Assembly (NCBI GenBank): GCA_002269645.1
Contig: NIVC01000180.1
Coordinates: forward strand, 310,001-374,000
Source: Macrostomum lignano
Lineage: Eukaryota
Direction of reading: 5' to 3'
DNA: 64,000 nt
Positions 24,529 through 39,790 of the stretch are shown here, one piece after another. Position 1 is the stretch's first letter. Each line of letters begins with the position of its first letter. A model generated the notes under the pieces. It saw only the letters and a list, made by a program, of their open reading frames with translations. It was not told where the DNA came from and searched no databases. The translations under genes were made by a program, and so were the position numbers.

Positions 24529-25378
24529 CTGTCTAATACCAGCTCCCAGTGTCGAATGGCAGCTCCCCAGTGCCTAATGGCAGCTCCCCAGTGTCTAATG
24601 ACAGCTTCCCAGTGCCTAATGGCAGCTCCCTATGTCTAATGGCAGCTCCCCAGTGCCTAACGGCAGCTCCCAAGTGTCTAATGGCAGCTCCCCAGTGCCT
24701 AATGGCAGCTCCCCAGTGTCTAATGACAGCTTCCCAGTGTCTAATGGCAGCTCCCCAGTGCCTAACGGCAGCTCCCTATGTCTAATGGCAGCTCCCAGTG
24801 TCTAATGGCAGCTCCAAGTGTCTAATGGCAGCTCCCCAGTGTCTAATGGCAGCTTCCCAGTGCCTAATGGCAGCTCCCTATGTCGAATGGCAGCTCCCAG
24901 TGTCTAATGGCAGCTCCCAGTGTCTAATGGCAGCTCCCAGTGTCTAATGGCAGCTCCCCAGTGTCTAATGGCAGCGCCCAGTGTCTAATGGCAGCGCCCA
25001 GTGTCTAATGGCAGCTCCCAGTGTCTAATGGCAGCTCCCCAGTGTCTAATGGCAGCTCCCCAGTGTCTAATGGCAGCGCCCAGTGTCTAATGGCAGCGCC
25101 CAGTGTCTAATGGCAGCTTCCCAGTGCCTAACGGCAGCTCCCAGTGTCTAATGGCAGCTCCCAGTGTCTAATGGCAGCTCCCAGTGTCTAATGGCAGCTC
25201 CCAGTGTCTAATGGCAGCTCCCAGTGTCTAATGGCAGCTTCCAGTGTCTAATGGCAGCTCCCAATGTCTAATGGCAGCTCCCAGTGTCTAATGGCAGCGC
25301 CCAGTGTCTAATGGCAGCGCCCAGTGTCTAATGGCAGCTTCCCAGTGCCTAATGGCAGCTCCCTATGTCTAATGGCAG
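24529..25378. repeat. 20-21-bp minisatellite (gtgtctaatggcagctccca) forming the RBCK1 3' flank and overlapping its stop codon
   Basis: The last unit overlaps TGC CAT TAG on the minus strand (25369-25378). Confidence 0.95.
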
Positions 25379-28300
25379 TTCATGCAGTTCGGGTGGCACT
25401 TCTTGTTGTTCACCCGGCAGCGGCAGCCGCCAGAGGTGTCACCCTGGCCGCCGGGTCCCCAGCGCGGGCCGCGGGTGGCCCAGCAGATCTCGGTGCGGCA
25501 CACGGAGCACATCAGCCAGTCGCAGCCTTCGCGCTTGGAGAGAAACACCTGGCATTTGGGGCACTTCATGGCCTCTCCGGACTGCAGCATGTCCTGCACG
25601 ATTCGGGAGTGACATTGGGAAACCAGTTGCAGTTAGTCTGCTATCCTATAAACTTTACACATGGTGTCACTCAATCAGTCAGTGTCACTCAATCAGCCAA
25701 GGTGTCACTCAATCAGTCAGTGTCACTCAATCAGTCAGTGTCACTCAATCAGCCAAGGTGTCACTCAATCAGTCAGTGTCACTCAATCAGTCAGTGTCAC
25801 TCAATCAGCCAAGGTGTCACTCAATCAGTCAGTGTCACTCAATCAGTCAGTGTCACTCAATCAGTCAGTGTCACTCAATCAGTCAGTGTCACTCAATCAG
25901 TCAGTGTCACTCAATCAGCCAAGGTGTCACTTAATCAGTCATTGTCACTCAATCAGTCAGTGTCACTCAATCAGTCAAAGGTGTCACTCAATCAGTCAGT
26001 GTCACTCAATCAGTCAGTGTCACTCAATCAGCCAAGGCTGTCACTTAATCAGCCAAGGCTGTCACCCAATCAGCCAAGGCTGTCACTCAATCAGCCAAGG
26101 CTGTCACTTAATCAGCCAAGGCTGTCACCCAATCAGCCAAGGCTGTCACTCAATCAGGCAAGGCTGTCACCCAATCAGCCAAGGGTGTCACCCAATCAGC
26201 CAAGGCTGTCACTCAATCAGCCAAGGGTGTCACTCAATCAGCTAAGGCTGTCACTCAATCAGCCAAGGTGTCACTCAATCAGCCAAGGGTGTCACTCAAT
26301 CAGCCAAGGGTGTCACTCAATCAGCTAAGGCTGTCACTCAATCAGCCAAGGTGTCACTCAATCAGCCAAGGCTGTCACTCAATCAGCCAAGGTGTCACTC
26401 AATCAGCCAAGGCTGTCACTCAATCAGCCAAGGCTGTCACTCAATCAGCCAATAGTGTCACTCAATCAGCCAAGGCTGTCACTCAATCAGCCAAGGCTGT
26501 CACTCAATCAGCCAAGGTGTCACTCAATCAGCCAATAGTGTCACTCAATCAGCCAAGGTGTCACTCAATCAGCCAAGGCTGTCACTCAATCAGCCAAGGC
26601 TGTCACTCAATCAGCCAAGGCTGTCACTCAATCAGCCAAGGCTGTCACTCAATCAGCCAATAGTGTCACTCAATCAGCCAAGGCTGTCACTCAATCAGCC
26701 AAGGCTGTCACTCAATCAGCCAAGGCTGTCACTCAATCAGCCAAGGTGTCACTCAATCACTCACCTCCAGTTTCTGCAGTCCCAGCTTGGCATTCTCGTC
26801 GTTCTCAGCGCGCCTGCGCAGGTCGTCCTGGTATTGCTGGCAGGTGAGGTCCTTGTGGGAGGCCCTGCAGGTGACGCAGTTGTGCTCCTGGCACACCTCG
26901 CACTCAAACTCGTTAACATTGTCCACCAGTTCAACGAATGCCTCGCAGTTTGGCGTCACGCAGTGGAAGGCGTTGGTGATGACGGCCTCGGCCTGGCGGA
27001 GCCCCAGCCGCTGCAGCCTGGCCAGCTGCTCATCGGTGAGCAGCTCCTTGAGCTCGGCCTCGGTGACAGTCTGCTGGCACGGCTCGCACGGGCAGATGAC
27101 GGGCAGCCGGTCGGAGTTGAGCGCGTGGTCCCTCAGGCAGTTCTCGCAGACCTCGTGGCCGCACTCGCGCAGCCGCAGGCCCCGGATGCCGTCGCCGTCG
27201 TCATCGTCGCCGCCAACGTCGCAGAGGCAGATCGGGCACTCGAAGCCCTGCTGCGCCGGCACGGGGATCAGCGAGCCCTGCGTCAGGTTCATGAGCTCGC
27301 GGAAGTTGCGCTCGCGCTCCCGCTCGGTCTGCAGATTGCGCAACAGGGGGGGGGGGCAATTCTGATTTATGAGGATTCCGGCTTCCCACTGTGCGACTGT
27401 CCGCAGGTGTACTTTAAGCCCAACCCCAGTGCCGCAGTAATGTACACTGAGCCAACGGGTTTCCAGTCTTTCCTGCCCTTCAAGCGCACTTTCGGCATTT
27501 AAATAGCGGTCACCTGGAAATTCACTCTTGTCACTGCGTCCCTGGAAAGTCACTCCGTCACTGTGTCTCTGGAAAGTCACTCCGTCACTGTGTCTCTGGA
27601 AAGTCACCCCGTCACTGTGTCTCTGGAAAGTCACTCCGTCACTGTGTCTCTGGAAAGTCACTTCGTCACTGTGTCTCTGGAAAGTCACTCCGTCACTGTG
27701 TCTCTGGAAAGTCGCTCCGTCACTGTGTCTCTGGAAAGTCACTCCCTCACTGTGTCTCTGGAAAGTCGCTCCGTCACTGTGTCTCTGGAAAGTCACTCCG
27801 TCACTGTGTCTCTGGAAAGTCACTCCGTCACTGTGTCTCTGGAAAGTCACTCCGTCACTGTGTCTCTGGAAAGTCGCTCCGTCACTGTGTCTCTGGAAAG
27901 TCACTCCCTCACTGTGTCTCTGGAAAGTCGCTCCGTCACTGTGTCTCTGGAAAGTCACTCCGTCACTGTGTCTCTGGAAAGTCACTCCGTCACTGTGTCT
28001 CTGGAACGTCACTCCGTCACTGTGTCTCTGGAAAGTCACTCCGTCACTGTGTCTCTGGAAAGTCACTCCCTCACTGTGTCTCTGGAAAGTCGCTCCGTCA
28101 CTGTGTCTCTGGAAAGTCACTCCCTCACTGTGTCTCTGGAAAGTCGCTCCGAGCGTATTCCGAGAGGTCATTCAGCCAGATTCCTGGTAACGGTGAATAT
28201 TGGAAATTCACACCATCAGTCCAACCGATAAAGGCAAATTTGAGAAGTCAGCCGTTCATTGTCAAATAATAAATCAATGCCTGTGAAGAATAGCAGAGTT

Positions 28301-38100: not shown

Positions 38101-39790
38101 CCAGGTGCGCTGCGGCTGCTTGGCCTGTCATGAGGGGGGGGATACCAGAGTCAGTCAACTGTAGTCGATCGCCTACTGAAGAGTAGCAAGAACAGAATGT
38201 GAAGCGAATCTCTTATCGAATGCCTACTGAAGAGTAGCAAGAACGGAATGTGAAGCGAATCTCTTATCGAATGCCTACTGAAGAGTAGCAAGAACGGAAT
38301 GTGAAGCGAATCTCTTATCGATTGCCTACTGAAGAGTAGCAAGAACGGAATGTGAAGCGAATCTCTTATCGATCGCCGACTGACATTTGAATAAAGATTT
38401 TAGCGTGTGAGGCCCCAGCTCAGCGGTTACGACCAGTTGATTGACAACTTGCCAGCTTGCCGGCGGGGGCTTCGAGCAGCCTGCACATGGATACGTACGC
38501 AGGTGCAACAATCACATATGGCGTTCAGCGGCCCTGCACTTACATAATTGTAATAATTGTCAAGCATGCAGGCCCTACATACGAGTACTCTGTGATTTCC
38601 AGCCAGTACTAATAGGCTTAACTGCTGTTCCAACCACTTACCACAGGCTCCATGGCAACGGAAACCGTTGCCGCGGGCACAGCTGGACTTGGCTCAACAT
38701 CCTCTTTTGCTGGTGAAGCTTCTGGCGTCGCTGCAGGCTGCGGATCGCCGAGCACGTACAGGTGCACCGGCTGCGTCTCGCTGACCGCCCCGAGATCCTT
38801 TAAGCACCTGGGGAGCAACAATGATGTCGGAGTTTTGCGTGGTTGGAAGCAAAAAATCGGGATTGTACTCCATGAAGGCTGGCCCATTAACGGGGGATCT
38901 GGGAGGCTGGCCCAGCGCAGCAACTGAGGATCTGGGAAGCTGGCCCAGGAACTGCGGATCTGGGAAACTGGCCCATTAACTGAGGATCTGGGAGGCTGGC
39001 CCAGCAACTGAGGATCTGGGAAGCTGGCCCAGGAACTGAAGATCTGGGAAACTGGCCCATTAACTGAGGATCTGGGAGGCTGGCTCAGCAACTGAGGATC
39101 TGGGAGGCTGGCCCAGCAACTGAGGAATCTGGGAGGCTGGCCTAGCAACTGGGGATCTGGGAGGCTGGCCCAGCAACTGAGGATCTGGGAGGGGCTGGCC
39201 TAGCAACTGGGGATCTGGGAGGCTGGCCCAGCAACTGAGGATCTGGGAGGCTGGCCCTGCAACTGAGGATCTGGGAGGCTGGCCCTGCAAATGAGGATCT
39301 GGGAGGCTGGCCCAGCAACTGAGGACCTGGAAGGGTGGCAGCAGACCAGTAAAAATTACCGGTCGTCAGAAGCCAGCAGCCCGCCTGCGATCCAGCACTG
39401 CCGTCCGGGCGGTAGGTCCCGAGCTCGAGCCGCCACCCGGGCCCGCAGCTCGCCAATCCGAGTGTCGCCGCGCGCCATCAAGCGGAGCAGCTGGCGCTGC
39501 CGGCCGCGGCCCTCCAGGGCTACCGGCAGGGCGAACCAGCCGTCATCCAGCAGCGACCGCCGCGCGACCACCGGTGATTCTTCCTGCTGCTGCGGCATCG
39601 CCAGTGGAGGCGGCGCAGGCCGGATGTCCAGCTGGACGTGCCGTTCGCAGAGCAGCCGCGCTTGGCGAGCTGCCTCCTCGGCGTCGCCTGACTTGATGGC
39701 AGCTTCAAGTCGGGCCGCGGCTGAGGAGACAGCTGGCCACCAGTCAGCAGCAACGCCCTTGGAAGCTGCGGTGGGACTGGGAGGCTCCAG
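35146..39790 (-). CDS. SHARPIN: SHARPIN-like LUBAC adaptor (LTM-UBL-NZF) with a C-terminal eIF4E-binding motif; start codon not found in the genome
   Basis: Exons 39360-39790, 38642-38807 and 37762-38124 are well supported; 36363-36566 and 35146-35151 (D-stop) are tentative. All are frame-consistent. LTM ARLEAAIKSGDAEEAARQARLLCE; UBL ..[69 protein letters not shown]. No RBR. Confidence 0.78.
35208..36355. repeat. 22-bp minisatellite (gactagcaatccactgtgacta) in SHARPIN-like intron
   Basis: Tandem copies. Confidence 0.95.
36614..37675. repeat. 31-bp hairpin-unit minisatellite (gtattgactgagcactcctcacgtcaataca) in SHARPIN-like intron
   Basis: Tandem copies; each unit is an internal inverted repeat. 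Confidence 0.95.
38168..38375. repeat. 51-bp unit x4 in SHARPIN-like intron
   Basis: gcctactgaagagtagcaagaacggaatgtgaagcgaatctcttatcgaat. Confidence 0.9.
38878..39335. repeat. 28-bp minisatellite (gctggcccagcaactgaggatctgggag) in SHARPIN-like intron
   Basis: Tandem copies. Confidence 0.95.

Follow-up and report, generated by a model that had tools for sequence, protein, structure and literature searches.

We analyzed a 64,000-nucleotide stretch of the genome of the flatworm Macrostomum lignano (assembly GCA_002269645.1, contig NIVC01000180.1, positions 310,001 to 374,000 of the forward strand), referred to here as the window and numbered from its first letter. Two genes lie head to tail on its minus strand. 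The downstream gene encodes RBCK1 (also called HOIL-1 or HOIL-1L) and the upstream gene, which we call gene A, encodes a protein with a SHARPIN-like layout; both are names of LUBAC (linear ubiquitin chain assembly complex) subunits. We rebuilt both models from the open frames and splice sites of the minus strand. Every intron of the two genes is of the GT-AG type. The outer limits (25369 and 39790) and the coding gap (31930-35145) given in an earlier note on this DNA proved exact, with both genes intact and on the minus strand.

Structure of the two genes

The coding sequence of gene A comprises 389 codons, which corresponds to a protein of about 390 amino acids. Exon 1 (39360..39790) follows the acceptor TTACAG (39796-39791) and encodes a LUBAC-tethering motif (LTM, ~39718-39611) and the first part of a ubiquitin-like domain (UBL). 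Exon 2 (38642..38807), flanked by splice sites, completes the UBL and continues into a Pro/Ala-rich linker. Exon 3 (37762..38124) carries an NZF zinc finger (38103-38044), a disordered stretch and a 4E-BP-type motif, RRICYSRDFLLSLQNCPLA (37863-37807), and ends at the donor CAG/GTACGA (a slash marks the splice junction). Exon 4 (36363..36566) encodes a Pro/Arg-rich tail and ends in phase 0, and the coding part of the last exon (35146..35151) reads GAC TGA, with the stop codon TGA at 35148-35146 and a 3' untranslated region (UTR) that continues downstream.

The RBCK1 gene begins with an ATG at 31929. Its exon 1 (31528..31929) encodes an LTM-like pair of helices and most of a UBL, exon 2 (30817..31008) the remainder of the UBL with an acidic linker after it, and exon 3 (30145..30306) an NZF (30300-30241) followed by a tail helix. 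Exon 4 (26765..27328) encodes RING1 and IBR, with Pfam matches to IBR and RING, while exon 5 (25369..25593) encodes RING2, in which GCDW (25530-25513) is the catalytic-Cys motif, and closes with the stop codon. The third intron additionally holds an optional exon, E4 (29336..29464), which has a good acceptor and an in-frame TAG, lacks a consensus donor, and is skipped by the GenBank models.

The same gene pair is present in two more genomic copies of identical structure and near-identical sequence, both annotated in GenBank: L001 on NIVC01004658 (gene A is P0001, RBCK1 is P0112) and L002 on NIVC01003120 (gene A is P0109, RBCK1 is P0010). When the exon coordinates of gene A are transferred to L001, the matching exons translate exactly to P0001; the GenBank coding sequence there starts at the base after the acceptor, is flagged as partial, and ends at the equivalent TGA. 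The optional exon of RBCK1 is included in two unreliable UniProt models (P0006 and P0011), and its in-frame TAG also occurs in L002. If it were included, the RBCK1 product would be reduced to LTM-UBL-NZF without the RING1-IBR-RING2 module (RBR).

On the contig of the window itself GenBank annotates only RBCK1 and leaves gene A unannotated. The submitters of the Mlig_3_7 assembly discarded transcripts overlapping repeats (PMC5730564), and we attribute the missing gene A record on NIVC01000180.1 to this filter. The M. lignano models that UniProt holds for this locus (P0002, P0004-P0006, P0011, P0012 and P0110) come from the ML2 assembly; they are frameshift-ridden, fuse neighboring genes and contain antisense sequence, and no conclusions on gene structure should be drawn from them. 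Four of them (P0002, P0004, P0005 and P0006), from the 2015 version of ML2, cover both units, as if the two were one gene for a single fusion protein. We find this scarcely credible. The same four models switch frame repeatedly and mix in antisense sequence, gene A has a stop codon in its own last exon that is conserved in all three copies, and GenBank annotates two genes. Additionally, splicing exon 4 of gene A to a site 17 nt before the RBCK1 ATG (the -17 site, described below) would shift the frame relative to this ATG, 17 nt not being divisible by three, and a TAG would follow near 31860; a fusion protein is thus excluded by the reading frame. The rebuilt models and the GenBank models of the paralogous copies agree with the earlier note that these are two genes on one strand, and we regard two separate genes, head to tail on the minus strand, as almost certain.

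The downstream gene is an RBCK1/HOIL-1 ortholog

The protein encoded by the downstream gene is 99% identical to M. lignano proteins in GenBank, which agrees with the flatworm origin presumed in the earlier note. These proteins include P0111 (BOX15_Mlig023960g2), which is annotated on NIVC01000180.1 with the same exon structure as in the other copies and whose stop codon corresponds to window position 25369. The named proteins among its matches outside Macrostomum are almost all RBCK1 or RBCK1-like, with E values down to 1e-102 and coverage of 98-100%. The NZF is recognized by Pfam (Zn_ribbon_RanBP, PF00641, E 5.8e-8 and 9.2e-7) and sits between the UBL and the RBR. The AlphaFold2 (AF2) model has a mean predicted local distance difference test score (pLDDT) of 80.5. 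In Foldseek searches its RBR matches HOIL-1 (8eaz_A, E 1.8e-22), with 7yuj and 8bvl at 56-57% identity; the IBR-RING2 part is 56-63% identical to human HOIL-1 structures and retains the catalytic GCDW motif. The UBL is modeled as strands and a helix at residues 60-136 and matches 4dbg_A (target TM-score, TMt, 0.86) as well as the LTM-UBL chain 5y3t_A (E 1.6e-8).

The LTM of this protein is less obvious. It had no Pfam match at E values up to 1, and a sequence search against PDB gave nothing significant; at the homologous position the AF2 model has helices at residues 3-17 and 21-33 (pLDDT up to 92). The LTM-UBL-NZF architecture that the earlier note ascribed to both genes therefore holds for gene A (see below) and for the UBL and NZF of RBCK1, and for the RBCK1 LTM it is based on position and two predicted helices. 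Domain order, database matches and the RBR fold all bear out the previous identification, and we conclude that the downstream gene is a clear RBCK1/HOIL-1 ortholog.

M. lignano also has a divergent paralog, RBCK1b (P0013, locus L004 on NIVC01000837), which is 46% identical to the RBCK1 of the window (RBCK1a where the two need to be told apart) and has no intron inside the UBL. We found no gene resembling gene A upstream of RBCK1b. A sequence near the RBCK1a start codon that resembles the spliced leader (SL), described below, prompted us to consider that RBCK1a is a retrogene, and this was rejected because three of its four introns are positioned as in RBCK1b.

Gene A is a likely partial duplicate of RBCK1

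The SHARPIN-like LTM-UBL-NZF layout proposed earlier for gene A is confirmed by Pfam, by a PDB sequence search, and by AF2 and Foldseek. The LTM scores 27.3 bits in Pfam (E 3.4e-6), marginally under the cut-off of 27.5 bits. In the AF2 model confidence is high over residues 14-49 (two helices, pLDDT above 90), over residues 85-162 (a beta-grasp fold) and in the NZF. Its best Foldseek matches are two chains of the LUBAC core 5y3t, HOIL-1L and SHARPIN, and isolated UBLs (TMt 0.81-0.90), with the limit that the model was built on an alignment of RBCK1 sequences and may favor matches to HOIL-1L and SHARPIN. The NZF is recognized by Pfam (E 1e-5), and the closest NZF to it is the solved one of HOIL-1L (3b08_B, E 2.5e-7). 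No RBR is present in gene A, in which the stop codon follows the disordered tail.

An exhaustive HMMER search of 1.84 billion representative sequences, with the paralog P0001 (93% identical to gene A) as the query, returned the gene A layout in no invertebrate protein outside M. lignano. The best matches to the full module outside Macrostomum are two SHARPIN fragments (P0123 and P0124, E 2-3e-9), and by sequence the SHARPIN chain 5y3t_C (E 9.6e-4) scores better than the HOIL-1L chain 5y3t_A (E 0.021). These two results, together with the LTM-UBL-NZF layout without an RBR, are what one would expect if gene A were a true SHARPIN ortholog that has lost its PH domain and the pair were a preserved ancestral bilaterian SHARPIN-RBCK1 tandem. 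The domain content and the NZF speak against such an origin. Pfam does not find the Sharpin PH domain (PF16764) in the gene A paralog P0001, whereas vertebrate SHARPINs score E 1e-47 for it, the gene A layout was seen in no other invertebrate among the representatives searched, and its NZF is nearest to that of HOIL-1L. Nor does Pfam find a PH domain in the long N-termini of the RBCK1-like proteins of sea urchin and Hydra.

The LTM-UBL-NZF module was used for a neighbor-joining tree (204 columns, 200 bootstraps). In it the SHARPIN proteins of vertebrates (bootstrap 85) and vertebrate RBCK1 are sister groups that together form a vertebrate clade (93), and the invertebrate RBCK1-like proteins fall outside this clade. 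Gene A clusters with RBCK1a and RBCK1b of M. lignano (80), which pair with each other (97). Following this topology, no invertebrate gene can be a SHARPIN ortholog, and gene A is a lineage-specific partial duplicate. With bootstraps of 93 and 80 separating gene A from SHARPIN, we consider the orthology described above very unlikely. The earlier suggestion that the pair records the origin of SHARPIN from an RBCK1-like ancestor is accordingly not supported, given the tree and the missing PH domain, while its more limited form, a tandem partial duplication that has been retained, finds support in the grouping of gene A with M. lignano RBCK1. The phylogeny that had been proposed as a check thus gave a lineage-specific duplicate rather than a SHARPIN ortholog, though an old and not a recent one: gene A and the neighboring RBCK1 are 28% identical over 127 residues, and the first intron, inside the UBL, is placed differently in the two genes, from which we conclude that the duplication is old.

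Two points weigh against placing gene A in this way. The tree is neighbor-joining only and was made from short, fast-evolving sequences, so that the grouping of the M. lignano proteins could be long-branch attraction, and by score gene A is about equidistant from SHARPIN and RBCK1. On balance the sequences make it likely that gene A is an old partial duplicate of RBCK1 that arose in the flatworm lineage, and that it would be a functional analog of SHARPIN and not its ortholog.

A 4E-BP-type motif in the gene A tail

Sixty residues past the NZF and still within exon 3, the protein sequence of gene A is RRICYSRDFLLSLQNCPLASRKPGGLP; the core of this stretch, RRICYSRDFLLSLQNCPLA...KPxxLP, lies at 37863-37807 on the minus strand and corresponds to residues 290-318 of P0001. 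The Pfam family eIF_4EBP matches the tail with an E value of 1.7e-4 and 21.9 bits, under its cut-off of 24 bits, and a PDB search aligns the motif with 4E-BP1 at E 0.014. In the exhaustive HMMER search two proteins match the stretch (E ~3.4e-4 to 3.5e-4), and both are themselves members of Pfam eIF_4EBP (E 6e-20 and 8e-34). The identity to a bona fide 4E-BP is 57-59% over 28-29 amino acids, and the motif is conserved in all three genomic copies. Gene A contains no IPGVT motif, no TP phosphosites and no FEMDI-like C-terminal TOR signaling (TOS) motif; RELLRSQ follows the LP. No protein outside M. lignano combines the motif with LTM-UBL-NZF among the representatives searched.

The likeness suggests that the tail of gene A may bind eIF4E through this 4E-BP-type motif. 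If the motif works, a ubiquitin adaptor with an NZF and a UBL would be connected to eIF4E. The motif had escaped the earlier note, as had the start codon that the SL may donate to gene A.

Divergence among the genomic copies

Across its three copies gene A keeps its frame, splice sites and stop codon, and the three indels that distinguish them (6, 3 and 3 nt) comprise whole codons. When the window is compared with the other two copies, gene A has a dN/dS of 0.50 (21 nonsynonymous and 15 synonymous changes) and RBCK1 one of 0.19. Gene A is under some constraint; this constraint is weaker than that on RBCK1, which fits a protein of which more than half is disordered linker.

The divergence of the copies over 25300-41500 of the window is a mosaic. 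L001 and L002 have the same gene A sequence, from which that of the window differs by about 3%, and the middle part of its region, at 89-92% identity between copies, is the most diverged part of the locus. RBCK1 differs by 0.45-0.84% between copies, and here the window is nearest to L002. Such a pattern suggests recombination or gene conversion between the copies, and because of it the conservation of the spacer between them is uninformative as a test of constraint. The spacer measures 3,216, 2,718 and 1,670 bp in the three copies, with arrays of varying length.

It has to be asked whether gene A is a decaying, functionless duplicate. Its dN/dS is above that of RBCK1, its region diverges most between the copies, it is unannotated on NIVC01000180.1, and its frame contains no ATG ahead of the LTM. 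Decay is nevertheless improbable in our view. Frame, splice sites and stop codon are conserved in three copies with frame-preserving indels; the zinc ligands of the NZF, its TF/M ubiquitin-contact residues and the YxxxxLL motif are all retained; and AF2 is confident for the LTM and the UBL. Moreover, the repeat filter of the GenBank submission accounts for the missing annotation, and an identity of 28% to RBCK1 implies that it has long persisted as a gene in its own right.

A start codon from the spliced leader

The acceptor TTACAG/ of gene A, at 39791/39790, conforms to the SL-acceptor motif of M. lignano, [T/C]TNCAG, and the SL of this species ends in ATG at its 3' end (PMC8629364). This terminal ATG is in frame with exon 1. 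The coding sequence opens 24 amino acids before the LTM, and no ATG occurs in the gene A frame ahead of the LTM, the next in-frame ATG lying after it. A frame that is open right after an SL acceptor, without its own ATG before the LTM and in frame with the ATG of the SL, leads us to suggest that the SL supplies the start codon. The protein would then seem to depend on trans-splicing for its initiator methionine. In flatworms there is precedent for an SL AUG serving as the initiator (PMC12582326, citing Cheng et al. 2006).

The spacer and possible co-transcription

The coding gap of 3,216 bp consists of tandem arrays for 2,526 bp (79%), which leaves 690 bp of unique sequence; the earlier estimate of a mostly repetitive gap with about 0.6 kb of unique sequence was close to these values. 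Tandem Repeats Finder (TRF) places an array of a 34-bp unit (15.6 copies) at 34388..34918, within what is probably the 3' UTR of gene A, and arrays of 20-bp units (~84 copies) and 23-bp units (14 copies) at 32003..33997. The spacer arrays are strand-asymmetric, the transcribed strand being poor in T (182 T in 2,146 nt), and no GT[GA]AG donor occurs on the transcribed strand of the whole 3.2-kb spacer. Its sole AATAAA (34090..34095, minus strand) is the putative poly(A) signal of gene A, and each of the three copies has exactly one AATAAA in its spacer. From this hexamer (34090) to the -17 site there are ~2.14 kb, of which 1,995 bp are arrays, so that ~130-150 nt are left. Minisatellites are found in almost every intron as well as in the spacer, with 13 arrays of 20-51 bp units within 15 kb (24530-39339).

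SL-resolved operons, which the earlier note had brought up for flatworms, are common in M. lignano, where 15% of genes qualify. They are defined as adjacent genes on the same strand in which the downstream gene is SL trans-spliced and the repeat-subtracted distance is below 1 kb, and the mode of this distance is ~100 bp (PMC8629364). Gene A and RBCK1 are adjacent and on the same strand, nothing is annotated between them, and their repeat-adjusted distance is below 1 kb.

In the window, a 13-mer resembling the SL, CAATTCTTGCATG (31947..31959, minus strand), ends 17 nt before the RBCK1 ATG and is followed from 31946 by RBCK1-side sequence, CTGATCTCC. At this place L001 (14892-14903) and L002 (9963-9974) carry ATTTATTGCATG, which matches the final 12 nt of the M. 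lignano SL, as given in PMC8629364, at every position. In a shuffle test the score of the SL-like sequence in L001 and L002 was reached in 1 of 2,000 shuffles, and that of the window copy in 72 of 2,000. Removing one T from the window sequence at the -17 site yields a consensus acceptor, TTGCAG/. In RBCK1b a strong acceptor, C12-TGCAG, precedes the ATG by 19 nt, and two independent UniProt models from the older ML2 assembly put an intron acceptor exactly at -17. The Mlig_3_7 assembly was polished with Pilon using RNA-seq in addition to genomic reads (PMC5730564), so reads bearing the SL could have overwritten a real TTGCAG/ acceptor. Whether it is an artifact of this kind or a relic, the SL-like sequence points to SL-RBCK1 mRNAs joined at -17. 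If RNA-seq polishing did write the SL over acceptors in Mlig_3_7, any study of trans-splice sites on that sequence would be affected.

Several observations weigh against co-transcription resolved by the SL. The SL-like match is no more than suggestive statistically, since the sequence of the window copy has a p value of ~0.04 and chance alone would give ~1.7 suffix matches of at least 13 of 18 in 64 kb. The two bases ahead of the -17 site are TG and not AG, and no AG lies within 38 nt of the RBCK1 ATG; the nearest ones, 38-45 nt upstream, have no pyrimidine tract and depart from [T/C]TNCAG. In GenBank the three RBCK1 copies have their 5' ends at -6, +9 and +12 relative to the ATG, none of them after an AG. 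Compared with gene A of L001, which starts at its acceptor, these differing non-AG ends suggest that no SL peak was recorded for RBCK1. The poly(A) site of gene A, in turn, is predicted from the hexamer only.

It is consequently plausible, a little short of an even chance, that the two genes are transcribed independently and that their adjacency is the footprint of the old tandem partial duplication. RBCK1 would then be driven by a promoter of its own, located in the unique 73 bp and the arrays that closely precede its ATG, and would not, or no longer, be SL trans-spliced, while the SL-like 12-mer would be a real genomic relic or a chance match that has replaced a former acceptor. The assembly, without an AG acceptor within 38 nt of the ATG, and the three RBCK1 starts at differing non-AG positions agree with this. 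So do the general figures for M. lignano, in which 85% of genes are outside operons and 60% of trans-spliced genes are monocistronic (PMC8629364), and the GenBank locus prefixes, which differ among the three RBCK1 and two annotated gene A copies, so that naming gives no link. On the other hand, once repeats are discounted only ~150 nt separate the sole AATAAA from the ATG, which leaves little room for a promoter, the donor-free spacer is outron-like, and the ML2-based models put an acceptor exactly at -17. RNA-seq polishing is a simple reason for the missing AG, and transcriptional units are reported to split in repeat-rich operon spacers (PMC8629364).

The gene-name suffixes g1 and g2 were considered as evidence of an operon and rejected, since the prefixes come from the clustering of transcriptional units with cd-hit, in a naming scheme that is ambiguous. 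The five locus identifiers and RBCK1 were not found in the supplements of Wudarski 2017 and Grudniewska 2018, and we found no paper that mentions Macrostomum together with RBCK1. A scan of the window with Rfam gave no matches.

Under co-transcription, transcription would begin upstream of 39790, and the gene A mRNA would be formed by SL trans-splicing at 39791/39790 and polyadenylated past the sole AATAAA (34095-34090). The polymerase would continue across the donor-free, array-filled spacer, and addition of the SL 17 nt before the ATG would create the 5' end of the RBCK1 mRNA. Reading the use of the SL, the poly(A) site and co-transcription itself from the DNA, we put the chance that gene A and RBCK1 are co-transcribed at about even. 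The best explanation of the locus as a whole, which we favor with modest confidence, is that of two genes, the upstream one an old paralog of the downstream one, with possible co-transcription.

The surrounding genes

Four further genes flank the pair. A transporter similar to the MFS/SLC22 type (43508-48287, plus strand) is divergent from gene A and is followed by an AMP-binding protein resembling acyl-CoA synthetases (~54800-60900, plus strand). An EF-hand protein (21259-22946, plus strand) and a protein similar to NAAA/acid ceramidase (up to 20855, minus strand) lie on the other side. The transporter, EF-hand and NAAA neighbors are also present at the paralogous loci. A 901-amino-acid uninterrupted open reading frame at 12962-15667 (minus strand) has RVT_1 (E 3e-28) and RNase H (E 3e-11) matches; it is similar to non-LTR retrotransposons and may be intact.

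Implications for a possible LUBAC-like complex in M. lignano

The search for a HOIP ortholog that the earlier note had called for was made with the human HOIP sequence, which matches its database entry at 100%. It recovered a HOIP-like ligase, P0290 (Mlig033604g2), of 533 amino acids, which over the RBR and LDD shares 42% identity with human HOIP. Its C-terminal LDD domain is recognized by Pfam (PF18091, E 5e-24), and two NZF-like fingers are found at the N-terminus. The search thus found a HOIP-like RBR-LDD protein, but the UBA pair of HOIP (UBA_HOIP) was not detected in it. This weighs against a complex of the vertebrate kind, as does the LTM of RBCK1a, which neither Pfam nor the PDB sequence search detected.

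By analogy with vertebrate LUBAC, the LTM of gene A would pair with that of RBCK1, and both UBLs could dock on the HOIP-like ligase. Judging from their architecture only, gene A and RBCK1a may therefore assemble in the manner of LUBAC. The most far-reaching reading of the locus joins several claims: partial tandem duplication of RBCK1 would have produced an independent SHARPIN-like subunit, expressed from an SL operon with RBCK1 and linked to eIF4E through a captured 4E-BP motif. As a whole we think this rather unlikely. If it were true, the LTM partners would be made together, and linear or RBR ubiquitin signaling would have a direct physical link to translation initiation; we know of no such physical link in any animal.

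SHARPIN-type subunits are regarded as a feature of vertebrate LUBAC. A second, independent LTM-UBL-NZF protein derived from RBCK1 would make two LTM partners per ligase a recurrent design, and M. lignano, for which transgenesis and RNAi exist, would be a tractable invertebrate in which to study the design of LUBAC. The locus also lends itself to a clean test of whether operons in flatworms bring together subunits of a single complex, and of how arrays expand operon spacers.

Comparison with known systems

The window RBCK1 has the order of HOIL-1L, with a predicted LTM-like helix pair, UBL, NZF and RING1-IBR-RING2, and shares 37% identity with fish RBCK1 across 98% of its length. It differs in having an LTM too diverged for Pfam and an optional exon with an in-frame stop, and in that M. 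lignano has at least two divergent paralogs, RBCK1a and RBCK1b.

The motif of gene A, RRICYSRDFLLSLQNCPLAxxKPxxLP, corresponds to the canonical YxxxxL-hydrophobic helix of 4E-BP (YSRDFLL) and the linker that follows it. In gene A, however, it is embedded in a ubiquitin-system protein of ~390 amino acids, whereas 4E-BP itself has ~120.

The pair also resembles the SL operons known from M. lignano (Ustyantsev and Berezikov 2021, PMC8629364) and C. elegans. Its two genes share a strand, and the upstream one is probably trans-spliced. The repeat-adjusted distance is well below 1 kb, near the mode of 100 bp, and repeats inflate the spacer as those authors describe for M. lignano (PMC8629364). In contrast to such operons, the downstream acceptor is missing from the assembled sequence, and SL addition to RBCK1 is putative.

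Gene A differs from SHARPIN in that it has no PH domain, falls outside the SHARPIN clade, carries the additional 4E-BP-type motif and has a start codon that the SL would supply. It also adjoins RBCK1 in the genome, while human SHARPIN and RBCK1 are on different chromosomes. Nevertheless, gene A combines LTM, UBL and NZF without an RBR, its LTM-UBL matches the SHARPIN chain of 5y3t in fold and sequence and, like SHARPIN, it resembles a partial copy of RBCK1.

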